A stretch of 63,650 nucleotides of DNA, filler included, from Octopus bimaculoides (GCF_001194135.2; 7 parts of 6 records of this genome joined end to end with filler, not necessarily neighbours in it), one strand, 5' to 3'; shown: positions 47-19,380, numbered from the whole stretch's first letter. Notes: a model not told the origin generated them from the sequence alone. Translations and numbers: made by a program.

Positions 47-1169
47 CTGATGAAATACACAACAGTTAACTAAATTGAAACAGGAAAGTAAGAAAAGAAT
101 CTTCGTCTGTAACCAACAGCTAATGATTCGCTGATCTATTCTGAAGGAACCGAAATAGCATCGCAGATATTTGGTGACTCTATCGCCCTCCCTCACTGTC
201 GTTAAGAAGCAAAATTCTGTTGGTGATGTTATTAATAGCATGATCAGAAATTGGTTTCAGAGCTATGGATAAGAATTGGTGCAGAGAATGACACTGTATC
301 TGTAACGGCATTTCTCAAAGCAGTGAAAATCTTGTCAGTTCCCTTAAGAAAATACAAAGACTACGTGATATGATATACAGCGGAAAGAAAAACTGATAGC
401 ACTAACACTTTCTTTCTTGAAGATTTTAATCTGTACTCATGACACCAAAAGACAGATCTAGTCACACCCTCGTGGGATATAGAGACTGAATTTGATCAGG
501 ACAGTGTTCACAAATGGCTAAAAATAAGGAGTCTAATGGCCTGTCTCTCTTCCATCTCTCTAACTGTGTAGGTTATAAATAACTCAGAATCAACGAGAAC
601 ATTGTAAATGCTGGAGATGTTAGTAAAGACAGAATGCTTAAAGTGCGAAAATGATTAACTCATCTGGTTTTGTAAAATATGGAAGAAAAAACTATCTGTA
701 TTCAATAAAATTCTTTTCCATTATACTTTAGCATCACTAGTGTTAATAGCAACAACTGAGACACGAGACTACTATCAAGAATACAATGTATCTAGTAACA
801 TCCATAGAAACAGTGACACTGATGAGATCGATATTAAATGGACTGATGACGACAGAGGTATAAAGTTAGTCCGGACAGTCTGTAAGTGCGGCCTCGTTGC
901 AGTCCTTAAGTGTCCCATCATGGCATTATAAATACTGGGGCACCTTGAGTATGTTCTGTTGCAAGCTTTAAGGCTACGTCCCTTCCTTCCCATCAATCTT
1001 ATTGGTCCTGTAAAATGTTATGGGCTCAGGTCCTCCATCTTGACTAAAACATTAACACTCCCCAGACCATATATTTGGTGCAAATGCTGAATAACAGAAG
1101 AGATAGCATTAAAGGTACCCAAGGAGTAGATTGAGAGGTTAAATCGGGTGGAATGAAAGAATAACTCAC

Positions 1170-1435
1170 TTATTAGTCGACGCAGCAAGACCTTCCCCTT
1201 CAGATGTTGAGTTGCCAGCATCAACAGTTGCACTATGAGCCGATGGAGTTTCAGTTAATGATACATCTTCGCTCTCGGAAACTTCTTCATTCCCTAAAGG
1301 TTCTGCAATCACAGTCACTTCTTCATTACCCACCAACGGTCCTTCAGACACCAAAGGTCCATCAGTCACCAACTGTCCTTCAGTTACCCAAAGAACAACA
1401 GCGAAAACAAATAAGGAAAAGACGGGATTCTTCAT
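1170..1435 (-). CDS. Secreted acidic protein, paralog A, first coding exon (read-through ORF 1166-1435, 89 aa)
   Basis: Starts MKNPVFSLFVFAVVLWVTEG|Q, a signal-peptide pattern, with context aacagccATG. The mature part has 14 D/E, no K/R before the last codon, no Cys and an N-S-T sequon. The ORF ends AAT AA|GTGAGT, a canonical phase-2 donor at 1169-1164. Homologous to 8464-8726. Confidence 0.8.
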
Positions 1436-1661
1436 GGCTGTTATTTACTTCTTTTCAGTCCGCCCCTAATTTACTGACACACGAGTAATATCGGGAACAA
1501 TAGATTTGGTTAATACAGAACACAAAGGAAATATCTAAAGCTTCTTGTTGGAGTTATCTTGTCTTGTGGTGGTTCTTGTAACACAAAGTCTTCAACAACA
1601 GTAGCGGGATAGTATCAGCAGAGTCGGCTAGGCTCTATCACATCTCTACTAAACACACAAA

Positions 1662-1703
1662 TTTATAACAGGTCTCCAACATTCTCATCTGAAACTTGAT
1701 TGG
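1662..1703 (-). promoter_or_regulatory. CCAAT box (1703-1699) and TATA box (1667-1662) of paralog A
   Basis: The minus strand reads GGCCAATC and GTTATAAAT about 230 nt upstream of the ATG. The same motifs at the same spacing occur in paralog B and in copy C. Confidence 0.65.
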
Positions 1704-2611
1704 CCAGAAACAAGTTCTGAAGTCATAAAATCTAGGACAATAAAATAAAAGCCAAAAAAGTCACACACTTCACTCTATTTCACATCGTCAAAGCCACTGC
1801 CTTCAAGTCAGATAAAAGATCGCAAGTGAGAACTGGAAATCTCATATGAAAAAGAGCTATAAAGTATAAATTCGAACAAATTTTCACAACTTTATGAGCA
1901 TGTGCGTCCAAATATATANNNNNNNNNNNNNNNNNNNNNNNNNNNNNNNNNNNNNNNNNNNNNNNNNNNNNNNNNNNNNNNNNNNNNNNNNNNNNNNNNN
2001 NNNNNNNNNNNNNNNNNNNNNNNNNNNNNNNNNNNNNNNNNNNNNNNNNNNNNNNNNNNNNNNNNNNNNNNNNNNNNNNNNNNNNNNNNNNNNNNNNNNN
2101 NNNNNNNNNNNNNNNNNNNNNNNNNNNNNNNNNNNNNNNNNNNNNNNNNNNNNNNNNNNNNNNNNNNNNNNNNNNNNNNNNNNNNNNNNNNNNNNNNNNN
2201 NNNNNNNNNNNNNNNNNNNNNNNNNNNNNNNNNNNNNNNNNNNNNNNNNNNNNNNNNNNNNNNNNNNNNNNNNNNNNNNNNNNNNNNNNNNNNNNNNNNN
2301 NNNNNNNNNNNNNNNNNNNNNNNNNNNNNNNNNNNNNNNNNNNNNNNNNNNNNNNNNNNNNNNNNNNNNNNNNNNNNNNNNNNNNNNNNNNNNNNNNNNN
2401 NNNNNNNNNNNNNNNNNNNNNNNNNNNNNNNNNNNNNNNNNNNNNNNNNNNNNNNNNNNNNNNNNNNNNNNNNNNNNNNNNNNNNNNNNNNNNNNNNNNN
2501 NNNNNNNNNNNNNNNNNNNNNNNNNNNNNNNNNATATATAATATATATATATATATATATGTATATGTATATATATGTATATATATATTTATATATAGAG
2601 AGAGATGGTTG

Positions 2612-2880
2612 ATAAATATTGGGAGAAAAGGCTTTTTTCTATAAGGGCGTCCATAGGGGAAGTGTTCCGCCCAGTATAAATATTTAGAAGAATTGGCTAA
2701 GTCTACGCTGGAATCCAGGGGAGCAAGTGTCTGTCCCAGATAAATAATAAGAGGAAGGGGCTCTTTCGATAAAGGAATCCATAGGGGAATAGTTCTGGCC
2801 GAGTTAAACATTAGAGAAAGGGGAACCTTCTATGAAGAATTCCATAGGGTAAGGCTTTTCTGTAATATAAATAAAAGAAG
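2612..2880. repeat. Degenerate minisatellite, about 64-bp unit, 4 copies
   Basis: The TCCA(TA)GGG core recurs at 2650, 2714, 2778 and 2841. Units begin with (A)TAAA(T/C)A. Confidence 0.75.
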
Positions 2881-3125
2881 GAAAAAATTGTCTCAACAAG
2901 AAAGCATGTATATTTCAGCACATATATCAATAGTAATAAGACAAATGAAGTAGAGGCAATCATCCAGTGCTGAATATATGATTAATATAGAGACAATTGT
3001 TCAATTCATACAAAACGTAACATAGATTATGAAATAATATCAGAAGATATTATTTTCTTGGGAAGCATGCTGACGGCTCGACAACAAAACTGTGAAGTGA
3101 CGGAAGTATTTTTCCTTGATATGTA

Positions 3126-3163
<38 letters not shown>

Positions 3164-3723
3164 GGCGGGGGAGGGAGAGAGGGGGAATGTGTGTGTGTCT
3201 ATTGAAATTACAATTTCAAATGAGATAGCAGTTACAGGTAACCAAAATTCTTGTAACTAAAACCTGCTTCATCCTGCTCTTTTATGTGTATGTGTGCGCG
3301 AGAGAGAAAGAGACAGACAGACAGAGAGAAAAAATGGTGAAGAGAAATTTCATAATATTTGTAGAATCATTGTTGTAAATTTCAAATTCATCGATGATTT
3401 NNNNNNNNNNNNNNNNNNNNNNNNNNNNNNNNNNNNNNNNNNNNNNNNNNNNNNNNNNNNNNNNNNNNNNNNNNNNNNNNNNNNNNNNNNNNNNNNNNNN
3501 NNNNNNNNNNNNNNNNNNNNNNNNNNNNNNNNNNNNNNNNNNNNNNNNNNNNNNNNNNNNNNNNNNNNNNNNNNNNNNNNNNNNNNNNNNNNNNNNNNNN
3601 NNNNNNNNNNNNNNNNNNNNNNNNNNNNNNNNNNNNNNNNNNNNNNNNNNNNNNNNNNNNNNNNNNNNNNNNNNNNNNNNNNNNNNNNNNNNNNNNNNNN
3701 NNNNNNATATATATATACATGAG

Positions 3724-3827
3724 GGAAATGGAAAACGGAGACAAAAGCACAAGATGTTATTTCAGTCATTTATCACCGACATATGTTTCGATGGGTACAT
3801 TAATATCAATCCGGAAGGAAAAATAAG
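3724..3827 (+). repeat. Dispersed repeat; inverted homolog at 6338-6446
   Basis: aaacggagacaaa..caagatgttatttca.tcatt...atgtttcgatgg..cattaatat.aa.ccgg aligns with the reverse complement of 6338-6446. Confidence 0.65.
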
Positions 3828-3830
3828 TTG

Positions 3831-3879
<49 letters not shown>

Positions 3880-4765
3880 GTTGCTGCTGCTACTGCTGCT
3901 GCTGCTGCTGATGATAATGATGATGAGGAGGATGATGATGATAATACTGTATCTTCCATAGGTAATAATTCAAGCAATAATGCCTTGTATCAAAATATTC
4001 ACAAAGATAATCGTAGTAAATTTTAAAAAATAAACAGTGTAAGGGAGGTAACTATACTTCCTTACTCTGTGAAAATAAAAACAGCTCCAATTTTTTTAAT
4101 GAGAAATCCTCCTATAAATTGCACAATAAAACTATTTTGCTAATAAAACTATTTTGCTAATAAAACTATTTGGTTTCTTATTTCGTACGGTAAACAAATT
4201 AAAGTAATCTTCCGTACCTATATTGTAATGTCATCAAAAGTAACTTCACCCAAAATTCGAGGTACCATTCAATTCTTAATTCACATCGTATTAGAATTGG
4301 TTTTGGCAACACTAATAATCTCAAATAGATTATCTCGTCACTCAATTATATTCTTAACGGTAAAAGTGATCCACTTAGTAACTATAATAACAATAATATC
4401 AATAATAATAATAATCACTCTTTAATATTATTGATTCTAATATTATTTGTAATTGTGACCTAAATCGAACATATGTTTTCAACGGAAATTGCAAAATTAA
4501 ATATGTAGTCTAGGAATGAAAGGTTAATTCCAACAGCAAGGAATTTTTCTATATTGGCCTTTGCTCAACTGAGATAAAAAAAACAAAAAACGCATAGATG
4601 ATCATATTTCTACATTTACATATATTAGTAAATGTAATGGTCTTAGCAAACGAATATGGCATCTCAAAGACTTTAAGAAACTATTTGCTTTAGACTGGAG
4701 AATTTTGACAAGATCGTTCCCTTATAATAAAGACAAACCTTTTTGTTCTTACGCCATATTCCCAC

Positions 4766-5024
4766 GGGCATATGGCGTAGTGGTTAAGAGCGCGGGCTAC
4801 TAAGCCTAAGGTTCCGAGTTCGATTCACGGCAGCGACCTGATTAATAATAGTAATAATAATAATAATAATATAATAATAGTAACATCGTTAGGAATAAGA
4901 ACCCAGGTTCGAAATTTCCCCAAGACACCTGACGAAGGCTGGCGGGTATATCAGCCGAAACGTTGTGTTAACAACAAACAAGACGAGGACAAATATCCGT
5001 CAAATTTAAATAATGTAAATAATG
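4766..5024 (+). mobile_element. tRNA-derived SINE with (AAT)n spacer and a hammerhead-like body
   Basis: A box TGGCGTAGTGG at 4773-4783 and B box GAGTTCGATTC at 4816-4826. The body is repeated at about 36975-37135 (-) and 37445-37600 (+). The tail is AATGTAAAT repeats. Confidence 0.75.
4924..4969 (+). ncRNA. Minimal type I hammerhead ribozyme motif (Penelope/retrozyme-like)
   Basis: Stem I GACAC/GTGTT; core CTGACGA plus one extra A; stem II GGCTG/CAGCC; GAAA; palindromic minimal stem III (AACGTT); GUU triplet. Confidence 0.6.
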
Positions 5025-5069
5025 CTTTTTGTTCTTCTTGTACGGATGATCAACTCTCTGTTTTACTCT

Positions 5070-5465
5070 CTTTTACTCATTTCAGTCATTTGACTGTGGC
5101 CATGCTGGAGCACCGCCTTTAGTCGAGCAAATCGACCCCAGGACTTATTCATTGTAAGCCTAGTACTTATTCTGCCGGTCTCTTTTTGCCGAACCACTAA
5201 GTTACGGGGACCTAAACACACCAGCATCGGTTGTCAAGCGATGTTGTGGGGACAAACACAGACACACCAACATACACACATGCATACACATATATACACA
5301 TATATACGACGGGCTTATTTCAGTTTCCATCTACCAAATCCACTCACAAGACTTTGGTTGGCCCGAGGCTATAGTAGAAGCCACTTACACAAGGTGCCAC
5401 GCAGTGGGACTGAACCCGGAACCATGTGGTTTGTAAGCAAGCTACTTACCACACAGCCACTCCTA
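5070..5465 (-). mobile_element. tRNA-derived SINE family B
   Basis: The minus strand has the head GTGGCTGTGTGGTAAGTAGCTTG..GGGTTCAGTCCC. Related copies lie at about 39441-39680 (+), 13430-13555, 35010-35140, 49860-50020 and 51370-51590. Confidence 0.8.
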
Positions 5466-5685
5466 CTGTTTATCCTTTTTTCCAAACACACGTGTTTGGA
5501 AAAGAACGTGTTTACGAGTGTTTATTAAAGAAAAAAAAATCACACTTTCAACTATTTCAAATATCTGCTCTGTTTTTCTTAGTAATATCTGTAATTTTCA
5601 CTGTATTCTTTTCAATCCACACATCTCATTCTTTATAGTTTCTATCCATCTGACATTCCCTTTTCTATTTACTTGGTCCTCCGGT

Positions 5686-6127
5686 GTGGAGGCGCAATGG
5701 CCCAGTGGTTAGGGCAGCGGACTCACCGTCAAGGGATCGCGGTTTCGATTCCCAGACCGGGCGTTGTGAGCGTTTATTGAGCGAAAACACCTAAAGCTCC
5801 ACGAGGCTCCGGCAGGGGATGGTGGCGAACCCTGCTGNNNNNNNNNNACCTAAAGCTCCACGAGGCTCCGGCAGGGGATGGTGGCGAACCCTGCTGTACT
5901 CTTTCACCACAACTTCCTCTCACTCTTACTTCCTGTTTCTGTTGTGTCTGTAATTCAAAGGGCAGCCTTGTCACACTGTGTCACGCTGAATATCCCGTAG
6001 AACTACGTTAAGGGTACACGTGTCTGTGGAGTGCTCAGCCACTTGCACGTTAATTTCACGAGCGGGCTATTCCGTTGATCGGATCAACTGGAACCCTCGA
6101 CGTCGTAAGCGACGGAGTGCCAACAAC
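5686..6127 (+). mobile_element. tRNA-derived SINE family C
   Basis: Head GGCGCAATGGCCCAGTGGTTAGGGCAGCGG..GGTTTCGATTCCC, 3' end GGAGTGCCAACAAC. Copies at 9232-9420 (+, partial) and 9995-10372 (-). Confidence 0.85.
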
Positions 6128-7605
6128 ACTCTCTACTATTTTATTGATCAGTTTAATATTAATATAATCAAGGTGAGTGTCGGACGAAAGCCTTATAGTT
6201 TAAGTATGAAAGTGGACATAAGCCCCTCCGACAAATATATGTTATATATTATAATTACTTACATTTGCAAACATGGCTTCTTAATGAAGACTGTTATTTA
6301 TGACTTCTACCCTGATCAGATTCATACATTATTCCACCTTATTAATCCTCCCGGTTTAATATTAATGCATCCATCGAAACATGTATGTCAGTGGTATGAA
6401 TGATTGAAATAACATCTTGAGCGTTTGTCTCCGTTTGTCATTTCTCTTATATCCTCCAAAACACGTTTCACTTCTTCTTGGAAGTATTACCATTATACAC
6501 GTGGTTACTGATATCTTAAAAGTGATTATGTGAAATTCGGCTGCCCTGGTAACTATTTTTCCGGAACTTTCCTTGAATGTTAAATAATATATAAATACAA
6601 CTTATATATATTTTTTACTAGTATATATATATATATATATATAAATATATACAGTCTGTTAAAGTCTGTCATACCGGCCATGACGAAGAGAAATNNNNNN
6701 NNNNNNNNNNNNNNNNNNNNNNNNNNNNNNNNNNNNNNNNNNNNNNNNNNNNNNNNNNNNNNNNNNNNNNNNNNNNNNNNNNNNNNNNNNNNNNTACGTA
6801 CATATATACATACTTATATACATACATCATACATGCATATAAACATGTAGGTATATATGCGTGTATACATCGATACAATATACAAATACTGAATCGCTGT
6901 CCCGTCTCTCGTTTTGAATGGAACCAGTTTGCCTTTTTAAGATAATGTGAGGCCCAGGTGTGACGCAATACATGAGCCTTGCTGGAAGGAGACGAACGAG
7001 AGCGATCATGTGAGCGGAGTCATGATCAGTGTGGGGCTCTTTTGTTTCGGGGTTAGTGCTCTTGACGGATGCTGTGGCCGCATAAGTTGAGGGAATTTGC
7101 CGTTAGGTTCGTCAGGGTTTAGGCGAATTGGACTTTTACAGACATATTCTGCCTAAAATGTATCGGCAATACACAAGAATAAGGGAAGAAGGTTAACTAT
7201 GCTTCTGTCCCCGATTTTGTCCCCATACCAGAGATCTCAAACTCTTTTGGCGATGCTATCAATAGACTGAAAACAGGACGTTCTTCGGAGATATTGATAA
7301 GAATTAAAACTTAGGGTGACAACACCTGCTGAACCGTAAAGAGAGAAATAAGGACTTCAGGTGTATAATGAACAGCGAAAGTAAAAGTATCATGAGATTA
7401 AGTAAAACAAAAAAACGAAGAGTCCTAAACAGATATTCCATTTGAATGGAGGATAGGTGGAGTGGTTTATTCAGAGATGGAAGGGAAAAGCTCATCAGGT
7501 CAGCAACAAATTAAGCACGGGAACATATCTCGCAAGGTAGAAATTGCCAATACTGCTGACGGACGTAGTAGGTTCTGGAATTGCGATCAATACTTCATAT
7601 CTCAC

Positions 7606-7646
7606 CTGGAAGGCTANNNNNNNNNNNNNNNNNNNNNNNNNNNNNN
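7606..7646 (-). CDS. Candidate short second exon of paralog B, mostly inside a 30-N gap
   Basis: Acceptor ttttgttgatcaagtatttaacAG ends exactly at the gap edge (7648-7647). Donor CCAG|GTGAGA at 7605. The position corresponds roughly to the paralog A acceptor at 47. Confidence 0.35.
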
Positions 7647-8463
7647 CTGTTAAATACTTGATCAACAAAAGAGATGAGAAAAATTATCCCTAAACTTCCA
7701 CGCTATGACAGGAAATGTTTATTGTATTTAATAGACAGGGTGGACGCTATCACCCGTGTCATCAATAGCTGTGAGAAAACATCCGTAAGATATTTCGTCC
7801 CCATGCGGCATGACATTGTGGCTAAAATAAACTCTAATGCCATATGCAGGGAAACCTTCCGTGATAGCCATACTAAAGGCACAAAAGAAGTAAGTTCCAT
7901 CAAGAATACCGGCGGAACTTTCCATTGGAAACGGAAAACTCGATTGAACACAACAGGCCAGATATTGTTCCAAGGGATAGGAATCAAAGTTCATGCACTT
8001 TGTAGAGATTACCTGCTCGGTATATTTAATAATATGTCAGAGAAAAGGAGATCCATCAAGAAATAACGAAAACCATAGTTTTCATATACAGATTATAGAT
8101 TCTCATTTGTAACTATTATCAGAGATGCACTGAGCTAAGTAAAGACAGATCTGCATTAAAACAACAAACGCAGAGGTTTTTCTAACGACAATGTCTGTTT
8201 GGATGGCACACTTAACCTGCTACTCAATTTGATATCACCACAAGGTACCATGAGTTCATTCTGTTGTAAGAGTTAAAGTCAGGTCCTCTTCCTTCCTTTT
8301 TTCCCCACCAATCACTGAATCTCTGTAAGGCATTATGGTCTATAACCCTCTATATTTACAACGCAAAATCCTCACCAGATCATAAACTTGATTCAAATTT
8401 TTGATAACAAAATAGAAACATCCCACTAGAGATACCCAAGGGTGGAGTGAAACAGTAACTTAC

Positions 8464-8726
8464 GGAGGTGTCCAGACAGTAAGACTTTCTCCTGTAGTTG
8501 AATTACCAGAGTCATTATCGACCACCGTTTCATTATTCACCGAGGGATCTTCAGTCACTGACTCATATTCACCATCGGAATATGCATCATTCGATAATGC
8601 TCCATTGTCGGGCGGTCCGTCAGCCTCTTCTTCAGTAATCACTGACGGTACTTCAGTCGACTGCTGTCCTTCAGTTACCCAAACACCAGCAACGAGAACA
8701 AATAAGAAAAGGACGAGATTCTTCAT
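8464..8726 (-). CDS. Secreted acidic protein, paralog B, first coding exon (read-through ORF 8460-8726, 88 aa)
   Basis: Starts MKNLVLFLFVLVAGVWVTEG|Q with context aacagccATG. The mature part has 16 D/E, no K/R/C and sequons NET and NST. The ORF ends CCT CC|GTAAGT, a phase-2 donor at 8463-8458. Confidence 0.8.
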
Positions 8727-8972
8727 GGCTGTTATTTTCCTTCTATTCGGTGTTTCTCCTCTCCACGATCACACGAACAGTTTGTATTAACAGAGCGGAT
8801 AGAGTTGATTAATACAGAACACAGAATAAACGTCTAAATTTTCTTGTTGGATTTGACTTGTGGTGGTTCCTCCAATACAAAAAAGTCTTCAAACACAGTA
8901 GTGCGGGTGTCAGCAGCTGAATCCCGTTACACAATCGGCCTGGCTCTGTCACTTCTCTACTAAACGCTCACA

Positions 8973-9014
8973 TTTATAACAAACCCATCACAATCTCTGC
9001 TGCAAATTGATTGG
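8973..9014 (-). promoter_or_regulatory. CCAAT box (9014-9010) and TATA box (8978-8973) of paralog B
   Basis: Same motifs and same spacing as 1662-1703. Confidence 0.65.
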
Positions 9015-9994
9015 CCGAAAACAAGTTTTGATATCATCGAAATCCGGGAAGTTAAAACAAAGACAAGAAAAGACACTCCCTGCACTCCCTGTCCAACCAG
9101 CAGAACCATCAGACTACCTCAAAGTCAGATANNNNNNNNNNNNNNNNNNNNNNNNNNNNNNNNNNNNNNNNNNNNNNNNNNNNNNNNNNNNNNNNNNNNN
9201 NNNNNNNNNNNNNNNNNNNNNNNNNNNNNNNTCTTCCTGTTTCTGTTGTACCTGTATTTCAAAGGGTCAGCCTGGTCACACACTGTCTCACACATTGTGT
9301 CACACTGAATCTCCCCGAGTACTACGTTAAGCTACTTGCACGTTAATTTCACGAGTAGGCTGTTCCGTTGATCGGATCAACTGGAACCCTCGACGTCGTA
9401 AGCGCCGGAGTGCCAACAACGTAGTGACGGACGAAATACTGCGAAGCCTTTCATCCGGCACACTAACGATATTTCTAGCTTGCCGCCTTATACATGGCTG
9501 ATATTAATAATAAGAATATTGAAACGGCATAAGTTTTCTTTCTTCTTACCAAACAGATTAAAGTGAAAATGTTCAGATTGTAACACAACCATTTGAGCAT
9601 TTGTCGAAATGTATTCTGATATTTACTTTGGCACAATCTGTTCAACATTCAAATCACACTGACGTCACCTGCAAATGTTATCATTCCTGGAGCCGATAAA
9701 TAAAGTAACATCCAAAATCAGGTGCGTTGGTAGAGTCTTAGAAACGATACGGCTAGTGGCCCTCTCTTGTATGAATTATCAAAGAATGAAAGCAAAATAA
9801 GATAAAGGCATATAATTTCAGTTTTAAGAAGATTCACCTTAGAAATACTGTAACTTCAAAATAACAATACATAGACGCCTCAAATGTAAATAGACACCAC
9901 CGGTTTTGAAAGATTTATTTCTACAGACAAAATAATGTCATTTGATGTGTTAGAATACTTAATCTACTATTTAGTATACAATAGCTTACAAACA

Positions 9995-10372
9995 ATCGTG
10001 GCACTCCTTCGGTTTCGAGGGTTCCAGTTGATCCGATCAACGGAACAGCCTGCTCGTGAAATCAACGTGCAAGTGACTGAGCACTCCACAGACACGTGTA
10101 CCCTTAACGTAGTTCTCGGGGATATTCAGCATGACACAGTGCGACAAGGCTGACCCTTTGAATTACAGGCACAACAGAAACAGGAAGTAAGAGCGAGAGA
10201 AAGTTGTGGTGGAAGAGTACAGCAGGGTTCGCCACCATCCCCTGCCGGGAGCCTCGTGGAGCTTTAGGTGTTTTCGCTCAATAAACACTTACAACCCCCA
10301 CTCTTGGAATCGAAACCGTGATCCTATGACCGCGAGTCCACTGCCCTAACCACTGGGCCATTGCGCCTCCAC
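9995..10372 (-). mobile_element. tRNA-derived SINE family C, reverse copy
   Basis: Reverse complement of the element at 5686-6127. Confidence 0.85.
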
Positions 10373-10761
10373 CGTCCGTCACTATATTCTGAGTTCAAAT
10401 TTCATTGATGTCAGCTTTGAATTCCACCATTTCGGGGTCGATAAATTAAGAACCAGTGAAACACTGGGGCCAATGTAATCGACTAGTCCCCACCCCACAA
10501 TTTTGAGGCCTTGTACCTTCAGTAGAAAGAATTATTGTCAGTGATGTGTGACAGAAACGTTTCTTTATTGATCTCTCGAAGGGAGACAGCATTCTTCTAT
10601 TTGTTTCAGTTATTTGACTGCAGCCATGCTGGAATATCGCCTTTAGTCGAACAAATCGACCCCAGAGCTTATTCTTTGCAAGCTTATCACTTATTCTATC
10701 GGTCTCTTGGAGACACAAAACACACCAACGGTTGTCAAGCGATGGTGGAGGAACAAACACA

Positions 10762-10820
<59 letters not shown>

Positions 10821-11089
10821 ACACACACACACACACACATATATGTACAATTATAATTAAGATATCTAAGAGATACCACCATGCTAGAGATAGCAGTCAA
10901 AACTTGACACTAAAACCACATCATGTATTCATACAGCACCAGGTGAAGAGACAAATAGACAATTAAATTAGCAAAAAATTATTTGATAATCCCTGATCCG
11001 GATTTCTGGTTCTGTATAAAAATATACTCTACTTCATCAGTGGGATATACACAGATCGTATATAAATGCAAATATATACATATATACAA

Positions 11090-12950
11090 CATACTGCTTT
11101 GTAGACGACATCTTTGTTTTTCCTTCAGAAGCATAGATGAATAAGTTGTCTGAATGGCCAACTCTGGAACAACCGACGTAGAACTGTCCACATGAAAAGC
11201 CTGATGTTTGAAGTTCCAAACCTTCTGCCTTGTTAATTGTCATGGGGAAACTGAGTTTTAGAGGGAACTGAAGTCTCTGCATAGGGTAGTGGTTGTCTGT
11301 TAGCGGAATTTATTGTTTGACGACAAGGCGACTTCTATTGCACAGTGTAAATGTGTTTAGATTGCGTGAGATTATGACAGGGCAACCGACTTTTAAGTGA
11401 AGTTCTTGAGGAGGGAGTTGTGGAGGATCTTGGGAGTTGAGAAATTCTGTTGGAAAGTGTGTAACCTGATCCACGTCGGTAACGGTGTCAACTGATCTGT
11501 AACAACATTCTTGAAAAGGTAGCTGGTTAAGTAAGCCGTAGTTAAGAGTATTGACAGCTGCATTTGTAGGTGCAAGAACAGCCCTGTCGCGGAGCCAATC
11601 TGGTTTCATGTATTCCGTTGTAAGATTTGGGTAAACAGCAGAACATAAGTCATTAGAGCTGGAGACAGTGTGACCAACGGTAGGAGTATCAATGCATCCG
11701 TTGTCCATTGCCGATTTTAATGAGTATTTCCGGAAATTGGGTTGTAGGCTGACCAGTCTGTAGGAGTGATCTCATGTTGATAGCGAGTTGTTTCGATTGG
11801 AAATGCGACCAAAGGAGGATTTTTAAGGGAAGCATTAAGTTCACCAGTGGGTGTTCCTTTGGGTATAATAGGCAGAGTTTGTTGAAAATCTGCAAGAAGT
11901 AGAGCCGCACCTCCAAGGACGTTATTGTTTGATCTAAGGTCTCTCATTGTGGTATCAAGTGCTTGTAGGGAACATTTATGGGACACAGTTTCTTCATCCT
12001 AAACAATGAGTTTGCACATCTTCAAAATCGTCGCTTCGTCCGAATAATGCATTATGTAGCGCGTTGGGCTTTCTTGGTGTGCTACATTGAAAGGCAATTT
12101 GAAGGTAGAGTGTGCTGTTCGTCCACCGTCGAGAAGAATCCAGGCTATTCCTGAGGAGGTAACAACAATAGTAAGGTCACCATTATACCTCAAAGCAGCA
12201 AGAAGATTCAGGGGGAATGTTTTCCCAGGTGCATGTAAGAAGCTGATTCCGCCAGTGTGTGTAGATGTTTCCGAGGACAAAATGATATACGTTAGCTTCA
12301 TCGGAATTCAGAAGGGATTCATCAGTAATGTAATGTTTGAGTTTGTGGATGTTGTAGAATGTTTCTCTGAGAATGAGACGATTAGGACAGGTGTCTTCAT
12401 TTATGTCTGAAGTGTTGAGAGAATAGGCGTCCAATCGTTGACCTCCAATTGCTATAACAAAGTCTTCCAAGAGAAGAAGCCTTCCGTTGTAAATGGCAGG
12501 GGTAGTGTGAGTGTCAACCCTACCTGTGATTTGGCGAGTCTGCAGTAAACTGTCATGGCACATTGTGTCTTTGTATTTATTCCATAGTGAACCTGCGTGT
12601 GTCAGGTTGCAGAAAACTAGCATTATTGCAAACAAAGTGTAGAGCTTGTGCGGATAACGATACAGAGAGGCCTTTTCAAGTGCATGAATATATTGATCAT
12701 CTGTATCCGCTTGGAGCAGGCTTCTTTGAAAGAACCGCGTAAGTGGCCGTCCACTGTGCAGGAAGTTGGAAGTTGATCCCATCCCTTAATGACATGAAGT
12801 AAGAACCGCAAATGGAAGCATTCGGAGTTCAGCGGGATGAACTGGGACGCGTCCGATTGTGCCACCCTTGTACACGACTGGATCTAAATGCCCAGCCAGC
12901 CTTGTTTTCGTCGTTGAATTCTACGTTGATGCGTGCATAAAATGTTTTGC
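11090..12950 (-). mobile_element. Helitron RepHel remnant (Pif1-family helicase region), frameshifted and internally deleted
   Basis: Successive frames give CFHLRFLLHVIKG..TVDG..FKEAC; KLYTLFAIMLVFC; APGKTF..SSGIA..LLDGGRTAHSTFKLP; ALDTTMRDLRSNN..LGG..ADFQQTLPIIPKG; RAVLAPTN..EFLNS..PPQELHLKVGCPVIISRNLN; RLQFPLKLSFPMTINKAEG..GQFYVGCSRV. These are Helitron Pif1 motifs in the expected order. Confidence 0.95.
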
Positions 12951-13220
12951 AGAGCATTTTTTTGCGGGGTACGGCTGTCACCGACTGTCAACCCCAAATC
13001 CCTGGTTATGACCTTATTGATGATTGCTGCGTAAGAGAGACAATCAATTTCTGACTGTTACTTCGCAAAGTACAGACCTAAGTGATGTATTTGCCGAGCG
13101 TGAACGAAATCGGATGAAAAGTATTGATTTTACGTGGGATCAAGTATATGGTCGGTCACATATACGCACACACTCACATCTGTCTTATATTATATAATAT
13201 AATATAATATTATATTATAT

Positions 13221-13272
<52 letters not shown>

Positions 13273-13599
13273 GACACATACACANNNNNNNNNNNNNNNN
13301 NNNNNNNNNNNNNNNNNNNNNNNNNNNNNNNNNNNNNNNNNNNNNNNNNNNNNNNNNNNNNNNNNNNNNNNNNNNNNNNNNNNNNNNNNNNNNNNNNNNN
13401 NNNNNNNNNNNNNNNNNNNNNNTATATATATACGACGATCTTTCTGTTTCCGTCTACCAAATCACTCACAAGGCTTTCGTCGGCCCGAGGCTACAGTAGA
13501 AGACACTTGCCGAAGGTACCACGCAGTGGGACTCAACACTGAACCATGCGTCTGCGCATATCAGTAATATATCTTGAATGGTATTTAATATACCCTTAT

Positions 13600-14240: not shown

Positions 14241-14511
14241 AGTTCTTAATATACACATATATATCTAAATATATATAGCAATCTGTCTGTCTTTCTGTCA
14301 GTCTATCTATCTGCCTGTGTGTATGACAATCTATCTAATGTTGAAAACAAGAGGCGATGCATTGGGAATGAACCTGGTATCATGTGATTGGGAAGCAAAC
14401 TACTTCTCAGGCAATCAAAACTTCACCTACATACGTAATAGATACATATTTACATATGTACATACATATACGCACATAGAATACAATATCATGCCACATA
14501 TGTATACACAT

Positions 14512-14582
<71 letters not shown>

Positions 14583-14588
14583 TGTATG

Positions 14589-14644
<56 letters not shown>

Positions 14645-15234
14645 TGTANNNNNNNNNNNNNNNNNNNNNNNNNNNNNNNNNNNNNNNNNNNNNNNNNNNN
14701 NNNNNNNNNNNNNNNNNNNNNNNNNNNNNNNNNNNNNNNNNNNNNNNNNNNNNNNNNNNNNNNNNNNNNNNNNNNNNNNNNNNNNNNNNNNNNNNNNNNN
14801 NNNNNNNNNNNNNNNNNNNNNNNNNNNNNNNNNNNNNNNNNNNNNNNNNNNNNNNNNNNNNNNNNNNNNNNNNNNNNNNNNNNNNNNNNNNNNNNNNNNN
14901 NNNNNNNNNTATACATGTATATTATACATACACAGACACGCATTGAGTAGGAAGGCAACTACGTTTAAAGATAAACCTTCACACGCTCACACGCACACGC
15001 ACACACACGCACACGCACACACACGCACACGCACACACACGCACACGCACACACACGCACACATATTTATTTCTATGCGTGTATATGTGTGTGCATGTGA
15101 AGTGTCTATATGTATGTTTGTGTAGGTTGGTATATGTTTATGGGTGCACATACACTTACAGTTGTGGGGATTTGTTCATATTCCTGTTTGTGTTGTTTTA
15201 CTAATGGGAGTTTCAGTTCTCACGTTTCGTCTAT

Positions 15235-15579
15235 TATCTGACTTTGAGGTAGTCTGATGGTTCTGCTGGTTGGACAGGGAGTGCAGGGAGTGTCTTTTCT
15301 TGTCTTTGTTTTAACTTCCCGGATTTCGATGATATCAAAACTTGTTTTCGGCCAATCAATTTGCAGCAGAGATTGTGATGGGTTTGTTATAAATGTGAGC
15401 GTTTAGTAGAGAAGTGACAGAGCCAGGCCGATTGTGTAACGGGATTCAGCTGCTGACACCCGCACTACTGTGTTTGAAGACTTTTTTGTATTGGAGGAAC
15501 CACCACAAGTCAAATCCAACAAGAAGATTTAGACGTTTATTCTGTGTTCTGTATTAATCAATTCTATCCGCTCTGTTAA
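15235..15579 (+). promoter_or_regulatory. Copy C: inverted duplicate of the paralog B promoter and 5'UTR
   Basis: 345-bp reverse complement of 8787-9131; I found only 2 mismatches. CCAAT at 15352-15356 and TATAAA at 15388-15393. It ends at a gap about 60 nt before the expected ATG. Confidence 0.9.
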
Positions 15580-18735: not shown

Positions 18736-19380
18736 GAGGAGGTGTAGAAGTTAAAAAGATTGCCTTCTTTGGTATCATTTCCAGAGAGAAAAAAAAAGAA
18801 GATAGAAGAGTTAAAAAATCTTAATTGAAAAACCTGTTCTAAATGACATTGGCTGGTTTTGAGGATAAAGCCAGATTCAACCAAACTGGACAAGACAGGG
18901 TGGTCACATTCTAAGTAATGACACATTAAAAGAGAAGATATAGGAGGGTGCTCAACAAGGCTCTGTGTTCAGCCTCCAGCTTTTATTATAGTTTTTGAGA
19001 CAATAACATTGGAGTTAAGGAATAAATGTCTTTAAGAACTATTGTACGTAAATGATTTCTTAAAGACAGCAAGCTGGCAGAAACATTAGCATGCCAGGCA
19101 AAATGCTTAGCGGTATTTCATCTGTCTTTACGTTGTGAGTTCAAATTCCGGCTTTCATTCTTTCAGGGTTGATAAATTAAGTACCAGTTGCAGACTAGGA
19201 TCGATCTAATCGACTGGCCCCCTCCCAGAAATTGTGGGCCTTGTGCCTAGAGTGGAAAAGAATGATTTAATTCTTATCATTGACCTCAGCGGAATTTGAA
19301 CTCAGAATGTAAAGACAGACAAAATACCGCTAAGCATTTCACCCGTCGTGCTAACGATTTTGCCAGCACCTCCCGCCTTT
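18495..19380. mobile_element. Cluster of SINE family A copies in the ankyrin intron
   Basis: The consensus GAGCTGGCAGAA.CGTTAGCACGCCGGGC.AAATGCTTAGCGGTATTTC..GAGTTCAAATTCC..TTTCATCCTTTCGGGGTCGATAAA appears at about 18495-18690 (-), 19065-19262 (+) and 19268-19380 (-). Confidence 0.8.

Follow-up and report, generated by a model that had tools for sequence, protein, structure and literature searches.

The window examined here is a stretch of 63,650 nucleotides of the Octopus bimaculoides genome (GCF_001194135.2), in which seven parts of six records are joined end to end with filler. The part that opens it, hereafter called the piece, carries two related open reading frames (ORFs) on the minus strand, copy A and copy B, that are very probably the first exons, coding for a signal peptide and an acidic linker, of multi-exon Octopus genes for secreted modular proteins with epidermal growth factor (EGF) repeats. 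ORF A (1435..1166) encodes 89 amino acids (aa) and ORF B (8726..8460) encodes 88 aa, with 40% identity between the two products (BLASTP, E 4e-12). Neither ORF holds a gap, A being located in contig 1-1918 and B in contig 7647-9131. The ORFs are considered as first exons because their stop codons lie in splice donor hexamers and because their relatives are spliced at the same nucleotide.

Exons, promoters and splice donors of copies A and B

The N-terminus of both products consists of MKN, a hydrophobic core of 14 residues and the motif WVTEG^Q, in which ^ marks a predicted cleavage site (and, further below, an exon border). The threonine at position -3 and the glycine at position -1 of the predicted site TEG^Q fit with signal-peptide cleavage in A as well as in B. 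The predicted signal peptide of copy A, MKNPVFSLFVFAVVLWVTEG, is encoded at 1376..1435 and its core exhibits a mean Kyte-Doolittle (KD) value of 2.5. That of copy B, MKNLVLFLFVLVAGVWVTEG, followed by Q and read from the ORF, is encoded at 8667..8726. Beyond the cleavage site, A and B contain 14 and 16 D+E residues, respectively, without any K, R or Cys, which gives the acidic linker a net charge of -14 in A (1170..1375, exon end after 88 codons and 2 nucleotides (nt)) and of -16 in B (8464..8666, exon end after 87 codons and 2 nt). The two copies share the start context AACAGCCATGAAG and, near the end of the ORF, the motif D(A/S)GNST..GE.L, in which the N-glycosylation sequon NST is conserved; this sequon is the only one in A, whereas B possesses NET and NDS in addition. 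An 18-nt tandem repeat detected by TRF in A at 1331-1388 encodes units of the TEGQLV/TDGPLV/SEGPLV type. No Pfam domain matched ORF A or ORF B.

Both ORFs end in a 5' splice donor of phase 2, within the context ...ACT AAT AA^GTGAGT in A and ...ACA CCT CC^GTAAGT in B. The donor hexamer GTGAGT of A (1164..1169, minus strand) holds the TGA that closes the ORF and matches the annotated junction of O. sinensis, which reads AA^GTGAGT ... CAG^G-AGA-ACG-TGT (K-R-T-C) and occupies the same nucleotide position. Similarly, the donor GTAAGT of B (8458..8463, minus strand) holds the TAA and is exactly that of the O. bimaculoides gene for XP_014783437.1, with the junction CC^GTAAGT ... CAG^G-ATA-GTA-TGT. 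In the genes of O. sinensis, O. bimaculoides and O. vulgaris, exon 1 ends after ...L(A/T)(A/V).(T/P)(N/P) with a phase-2 GT donor at the same position. The start of intron 1 covers 202..1163 in copy A (minus strand), according to the alignment with the O. sinensis locus, and the segment 202-888 is homologous to intron 1 of an O. vulgaris paralogue. In copy B, the start of intron 1 covers 7232..8457 (minus strand), with 8190-8457 resembling the intron of A and 7232-7406 resembling the introns of paralogues. The segment 7647-8190 has no counterpart in the intron of A and may be an insertion in that of B. Overlapping ORFs of 134 aa (plus strand, 7662-8063) and 102 aa (minus strand, 7731-8036) also occur in this segment, with no Pfam match.

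Upstream of A and of B, the elements GGCCAATCAA and TTATAAAT are found, and the distance from CCAAT to TATAAA is 36 nt in both copies. The CCAAT box of A (1699..1703, minus strand, inside GGCCAATCAA) is kept in B, in a third, incomplete copy C, in the O. sinensis orthologue of A and in the Logan contig L005; the TATAAA box of A (1662..1667, minus strand) is located 232 nt upstream of the ATG. The corresponding boxes of B, on the same strand, are at 9010..9014, as read directly and in an alignment of seven sequences, and at 8973..8978, 252 nt upstream of the ATG. Over the whole piece, the composite motif GGCCAATCA-N25-32-TTATAAAT is restricted to three sites, one each in A, B and C. According to the seven-sequence alignment, the CCAAT-36 nt-TATAAA promoter, followed by an unspliced 5' untranslated region (5'UTR) of ~200 nt ending with AACAGCCATG, represents a family feature. 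The putative 5'UTR of A would accordingly extend over 1436..1635 (minus strand, ~200 nt, with a predicted start) and is colinear with the 212-nt 5'UTR of the transcript contig L004 (run SRR21764059, 1210 nt), which encodes an entire 187-aa paralogue. L004 is split into four blocks, 98-100% identical, when aligned with the genomic DNA of the O. sinensis locus, and therefore corresponds to a spliced mRNA. The first of these blocks begins 212 nt before the ATG, ~40 nt 3' of the conserved TATAAA in the seven-sequence alignment, and the position of this 5' end supports the proposed promoter and the unspliced 5'UTR of ~200 nt.

Copy A and the O. sinensis 'LTBP2-like' gene (XP_036369591.1 / XP_029651374.2) are orthologous, given that the flanking DNA is 81-90% identical and the exon 1 products are 68% identical. 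Positions 907-1918 correspond to 10535-9556 of the O. sinensis locus L001 at 81%, positions 422-566 to 10676-10530 at 90%, and exon 1 of A is 68% identical to that of XP_029651374.2 at the aa level (tblastn) and 84-87% at the nt level. The O. sinensis gene (isoforms X1/X2; CM016884.1, ~312 kb) exhibits the same donor AA^GTGAGT, the same CCAAT/TATA promoter and the same GNSTSEGE motif as A. Compared to this gene, copy A is represented in the window by its promoter and exon 1 alone, followed by the first 1.1 kb of intron 1. Exon 2 of O. sinensis occurs 2.55 kb past the donor and only 1.17 kb of the piece remains after the donor of A, so that exon 2 of A is expected beyond the start of the piece. 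A candidate for a decayed exon 2 at 365-321 (minus strand), in which RSLCIFLRELTRFSL was aligned with RTWCGFLRRCTKYSL (tblastn, E 0.64), was rejected: it is interrupted by in-frame stops, has none of the Cys residues and maps, when placed by its colinearity with the O. sinensis gene, to intron 1, ~2 kb before the real exon 2. For B, no orthologous locus was found, and the flanking orthology holds for A only.

The homology between A and B spans a total of ~0.95 kb and runs from the promoter through exon 1 into the beginning of the intron. It begins ~380 nt upstream of the ATG, where B is cut by the gap at 9132, and ends ~280 nt into the intron; between A and copy C, the upstream homology extends to about -480. 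An additional island of homology occurs ~1 kb downstream (212-277 against 7239-7305). Depending on the segment, the nt identity of A and B amounts to 70% in the promoter, 76% in the 5'UTR, 87% in the DNA coding for the signal peptide, 60% in the acidic part, 74% in the first 100 nt after the ORF and 56% in the next 190 nt, beyond which it falls to background. The coding indels, of 6, 3 and 6 nt, are all multiples of three, whereas the indels of the flanking non-coding DNA measure 1, 2, 3, 4, 5, 7, 10, 16 and 23 nt. No shared downstream exon was detected when the regions downstream of A and B were compared by tblastx and sensitive blastn.

With respect to selection, the DNA coding for the signal peptide displays no synonymous change between A and B (0 of 14 sites), compared to 25 of 45 sites in the rest of the ORF (Fisher p = 1.2e-4). 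Outside the signal peptide, dS is ~1.0 and dN is 0.44 (dN/dS 0.44), and for the acidic part of A and its O. sinensis orthologue dS is 0.29 and dN is 0.15 (dN/dS ~0.5). Among six pairwise comparisons, four give a dS of 0-0.08 for the signal part, against 0.3-1.0, with many indels, in the adjacent coding DNA. By these ratios the acidic linker is weakly constrained (dN/dS about 0.45-0.5), its frame, charge and sequon being kept, and the 5' end is either held at the nucleotide level or homogenised by gene conversion. The linker changes by substitution, in-frame indels and tandem repeats, and its length among the paralogues ranges from 36 to 237 aa.

Much of what a preliminary description of this DNA had read from the sequence alone agrees with these results. 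The pair of paralogous signal-peptide ORFs with common motifs is borne out by the 40% identity (E 4e-12) and the hydrophobic core, a recount returned the same 14 and 16 D/E residues with neither Cys nor K/R in the mature region, and the identical spacing of the shared CCAAT/TATA promoter was measured as 36 nt in both copies. The GPLV and GNEEV repeats of A are real, the 18-nt repeat having been delimited by TRF, and the contrast of a conserved signal peptide and promoter with a diverged acidic part appears in the synonymous changes (signal dS 0 against ~1.0). The proposal of a whole-gene duplication with about 1 kb of downstream homology is not borne out, as the homology is limited to the ~0.95 kb of promoter, exon 1 and intron start and the piece contains no downstream exon.

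The Octopus protein family and its modules

A profile built from A and B was run with hmmsearch on 1.84 billion representative proteins and returned eight proteins besides the own ORF of B. Seven of them start with the same signal peptide and acidic stretch (E 1.5e-19 to 3.5e-8, lengths of 67-379 aa) and the eighth is a weak match to an unrelated repeat protein of 726 aa. Among the seven, five are named as Octopus proteins, one carries a database identifier only and one stems from an unlabelled sequencing run. The relatives comprise XP_029651374.2 (P0002) and XP_036369591.1 ('LTBP2-like') and XP_036361583.1 ('fibrillin-2-like') from O. sinensis, CAI9741403.1 (P0006, 'fibulin-1-like') and CAJ1099417.1 from O. 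vulgaris, the 195-aa XP_014783437.1 (P0007, 'adhesion GPCR E2') from O. bimaculoides, UPI00069532CB (P0005), with no organism attached, and P0008, an ORF of 67 aa restricted to exon 1, on a contig of the unlabelled run. The N-terminal exon of the family reads MK(N/K/S)..hydrophobic..W(V/E/L)TEGQ, followed by an acidic stretch with D.GNST.EGE.L near the exon end, and both A and B conform to this pattern. A search for homologous proteins by words, using B or the first 128 aa of P0006, retrieved only ORF B and missed P0006 itself, and is hence uninformative; a lookup of the contigs encoding A, B, P0002 and P0006 found nothing on record, and literature searches on octopus EMI, EGF-like, acidic secreted and calcium-binding EGF proteins yielded no paper describing the family.

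The longer relatives beginning with this segment consist of 187-379 aa. In most of them, the acidic stretch precedes a basic module with eight Cys residues, of the pattern C-x3-C-...-YK-...-C-...-C-.KY-...-C-x2-CC-x-GW-x-G-x-PG-x-C, ending in ...CCxGWxGxPGxC. The exceptions are P0004, in which the acidic stretch leads directly to EGF repeats, P0005, whose model ends after the Cys module, and P0008 with exon 1 alone. The complete models continue with tandem D-x-N-E-C repeats, of which two to six or more follow the Cys module. In five relatives, these repeats are matched by the Pfam families EGF_CA and cEGF, with E values down to 1.9e-37. The three annotated genes share one exon map, in which exon 1 is separated by an intron 1 of 2.5, 5.4 or 7.4 kb from a pair of short exons coding for the Cys module, and each EGF repeat has an exon of its own. 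In five paralogues, the Cys module and the acidic part carry opposite net charges, +11 to +19 and -5 to -83, respectively. The most extreme acidic segment, that of P0005, has ~237 aa, a net charge of -83 and DESVDEDESV-like repeats; the gene model of P0005 also translates the 5'UTR at one end and an intron at the other. In the AlphaFold model of the paralogue P0007, the acidic part reaches pLDDT values of 30-45, compared to 86-90 in the Cys module, which forms a long beta-hairpin, and 72-81 in the EGF repeats, and this model is consistent with a disordered acidic part.

The paralogues XP_014783437.1, CAI9741403.1, CAJ1099417.1 and UPI00069532CB share with B the signal peptide, the GNST..GESL motif, a junction of the ...PP^IVC type and the promoter. 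The DNA upstream of B is 79% identical to that upstream of the P0007 gene, and exon 1 of B shares 53% of its aa with the N-terminus of CAI9741403.1 (tblastn). However, these paralogues differ from B in that their exons 1 are only 40-53% identical to its own, and none of them is its orthologue.

As far as known systems are concerned, the relatives share with the calcium-binding EGF (cbEGF) proteins, such as fibrillin, LTBP, fibulin, NELL1/2, EMR2/CD97 and Notch (EGF11-13), the tandem D-x-N-E-C repeats encoded by one exon each. No TB, GAIN or seven-transmembrane (7TM) domain and no fibulin C-terminal module was found by Pfam in P0002-P0007, but EGF-type families only, and the database names (LTBP2-like, fibulin-like, fibrillin-like, ADGRE2) thus reflect the EGF repeats alone. 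Unlike fibrillin and LTBP, the relatives P0002-P0007 are devoid of the TB domains (8-Cys, TGF-beta-binding), and the window itself does not contain these exons; unlike EMR2, the 195-aa P0007 consists of EGF repeats without GAIN domain or seven transmembrane helices. The order of signal peptide, Cys module and EGF repeats, the CCxGWxGxxGxC end and a Y-K/R-rich strand resemble the organisation of the EMI proteins (EGFL7/EGFL8, emilins, multimerins). The module of the relatives is shorter than an EMI domain (~55 aa), contains eight Cys and resembles its C-terminal half. Its assignment as an EMI domain (PF07546) was not supported, as the best Pfam score was below threshold (12.8 bits, E 0.21, also 1.3; cutoff 25), a profile search of the PDB sequences with the Cys module gave no match, and Foldseek retrieved EGF arrays only (NELL1/2, EMR2/CD97, Notch, fibrillin, uromodulin) and no EMI structure. 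Precursor families with a conserved signal peptide and a hypervariable remainder, such as the peptide superfamilies of cone snails, resemble A and B, in which the signal peptide is conserved even at synonymous sites next to a divergent remainder. In contrast to such precursors, the variable part here is a disordered linker without Cys and not a mature peptide, and the precursor continues past the ORF into further exons.

Proposed assembly of the gene product and weight of the alternatives

Taken together with the relatives, the first exons suggest the following scheme. A CCAAT box, 36 nt and a TATA box would drive a transcript with an unspliced 5'UTR of ~200 nt, the translation of which would begin at the conserved AACAGCCATGAAG. 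A signal peptide of 20 aa would be cleaved after TEG, and the rest of exon 1 would provide an acidic, Ser/Thr-rich segment of 67-68 aa with the conserved NST sequon. From the phase-2 donor, the transcript would be spliced to two short exons coding, as in most relatives, for the basic 8-Cys module and then to one exon for each calcium-binding EGF repeat, in such a way that the acidic stretch would serve as an N-terminal linker or pro-region and not as a protein of its own. Conceivably, the acidic segment balances the charge of the basic Cys module while the protein is being secreted, and the K-R dipeptide that arises where exons 1 and 2 are joined may be the site at which this segment is removed in A-type members.

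Several observations weigh against this scheme or parts of it. No Cys-module or EGF exon was found anywhere in the piece by tblastn with all relatives, so that the continuation of A and B is deduced from these relatives, and the transcript evidence comes from the paralogue contig L004 and not from A or B themselves. The promoter of A begins only 6.5 kb past the donor of B, without any exon of B in between, and the O. sinensis locus contains no B-like exon within 10 kb upstream of the orthologue of A, unlike the scaffold considered here. This scaffold is a chain of small contigs, and the tandem arrangement of A and B is therefore unverified. As to the proposed roles of the acidic segment, the K-R junction is absent in B-type members, and the net charge of -83 of the acidic part of P0005 far exceeds the +19 of its module.

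The opposite view, according to which A and B are each an entire small gene whose product, an extremely acidic secreted protein or a peptide precursor with a mature part of ~68 aa, ends at the TGA or TAA, was that of the preliminary description and is now barely credible. An in-frame stop does directly follow the acidic part in both ORFs, an exon-1-only ORF was also called in another octopus read set (P0008) and intron retention could in principle give such a product. However, the stops belong to the donor consensus GTGAGT/GTAAGT, exon 1 of the O. sinensis orthologue and of two paralogues is spliced at this very nucleotide, which in most relatives leads into the Cys module, the paralogue mRNA contig is spliced, and P0008 derives from a genomic contig that includes the promoter. 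The orthologue evidence effectively refutes the small-gene view. Likewise, the statement that no known family could be recognised gives way to the full-length relatives, in which such segments are N-terminal linkers of cbEGF proteins, a result that the preliminary description had itself named as counter-evidence. The idea of a lineage-specific peptide family holds for the lineage, every credible match of exon 1 being from Octopus or from an unidentified run, and fails for the stand-alone peptides.

Greater weight should be given, although it remains rather unlikely, to the suggestion that no intact gene starts at B, nor at its twin C, B being either a partial duplicate or the result of contigs misplaced or duplicated by scaffolding, which would make the tandem layout partly an artefact. 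The lack of an exon 2, exon 3 or EGF exon between B and the promoter of A or elsewhere in the piece, where relatives have an intron 1 of 2.5-7.4 kb, is in line with it, as are the position of B on a 1.5-kb contig between gaps, the 99.4% identity of B with C, which abuts the edge of the piece, and the low assembly quality indicated by an unmerged 49-nt overlap at 5838-5847. The O. sinensis locus without B adds to these points, since the split of A and B (dS ~1) predates the split of the species (dS ~0.3). Against it, the ATG, signal peptide, frame, donor, CCAAT and TATA of B are all intact, the homology to paralogue introns is colinear across the gap 7617-7646, the upstream contexts of B and C differ as far as they are readable, and the family clusters of O. 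sinensis also include inverted members. It is improbable, though less so than the small-gene view, that A and B, and maybe more copies, are alternative first exons arrayed within one gene, each with its own promoter, signal peptide and acidic N-terminus, which are spliced to common Cys-module and cbEGF exons off the piece and give isoforms with different acidic N-termini. In favour of this view, B precedes A on one and the same strand, the phase-2 donor of either copy would keep the frame of a common exon 2, no further exon of B is found before A, and a paralogue intron 1 of up to 7.4 kb is about as long as the distance from B to A. Nevertheless, the O. sinensis orthologue has a single first exon with no second exon-1-like sequence within 10 kb upstream, its isoforms vary in their EGF repeats with an identical exon 1, the promoter and exon of B are nearer to the genes of P0007 (79%) and P0003 (75%) than to A (70%), and the inverted copy C cannot share exons with A. 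If true, such an array would introduce a variable-exon layout in the style of the clustered protocadherins or UGT1A into an octopod-restricted extracellular protein gene. B may be the start of a separate gene with exons lost or misplaced in the assembly, a partial duplicate or an alternative first exon of the gene of A.

Under the preferred interpretation of A and B as first exons of EGF-repeat genes, the window supplies the 5' part, with promoter and exon 1, of genes from an Octopus family that is still uncharacterised. In this family, a strongly cationic Cys module is combined with an anionic N-terminal segment that evolves fast and is probably glycosylated, and its members can reasonably be regarded as candidates for matrix, adhesive, egg-coat or mineral-associated proteins of the octopus. 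A more general lesson is that a short eukaryotic ORF closed by a TGA or TAA inside GTGAGT or GTAAGT is to be read as a first exon and not as a small protein.

Copy C, gaps and repeats of the scaffold

Copy C consists of an inverted promoter and 5'UTR (15235..15579, plus strand), with CCAAT at 15352-15356 and TATAAA at 15388-15393. It is 99.4% identical to the reverse complement of 8787-9131 of copy B and is cut by the edge of the piece 61 nt short of the expected ATG. It is explained either by a very recent duplication with inversion or by a contig that was duplicated or placed in the wrong orientation. In O. sinensis, additional EGF exons of the family flank the XP_036361583.1 gene on both strands (locus L006, 3061-3252 on the plus and 18961-19077 on the minus strand), from which it follows that the family occurs there in local clusters with inverted members.

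The gaps of the scaffold are of unequal reliability. Beyond the gap 7617-7646, the homology to the paralogue introns resumes colinearly (7232-7406). The gap 5838-5847, of 10 N, is bordered by identical flanks of 49 nt (5789-5837 and 5848-5896), and thus corresponds to a spurious gap at an unmerged contig overlap, which points to a low quality of the assembly in this region. At the gap 1919-2533, the homology with O. sinensis ends exactly, nothing syntenic being found beyond, and this join is therefore unverified. Other gaps are located at 3401-3706, 6695-6794 and 9132-9231. Most gaps adjoin microsatellites of the AT, AC, TACA and CACACG types (2534-2597, 6622-6651, 6795-6846, 13185-13284, 14498-14645 and 14980-15063), which probably explain the contig breaks.

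Between B and C, frame-shifted fragments of a PIF1-like helicase occur at 11040-12900 on the minus strand (PIF1, E 1.3e-12 and 8.3e-9; Pif1_2B_dom, E 3.2e-11), and they most likely belong to a decayed Helitron-type transposon. Among ten long stop-free segments of the minus strand, Pfam matched these helicase fragments only. Two families of repeats resembling short interspersed nuclear elements (SINEs), in which ARAGORN detected no tRNA-like head, are distributed over 5686-6127, 9233-9420 and 9999-10372 and also over 5055-5464, 10593-10801 and 13423-13548. Their copies are 75-95% identical, with up to 95% identity to an O. bimaculoides locus, and many of them are present in all three Octopus loci compared.

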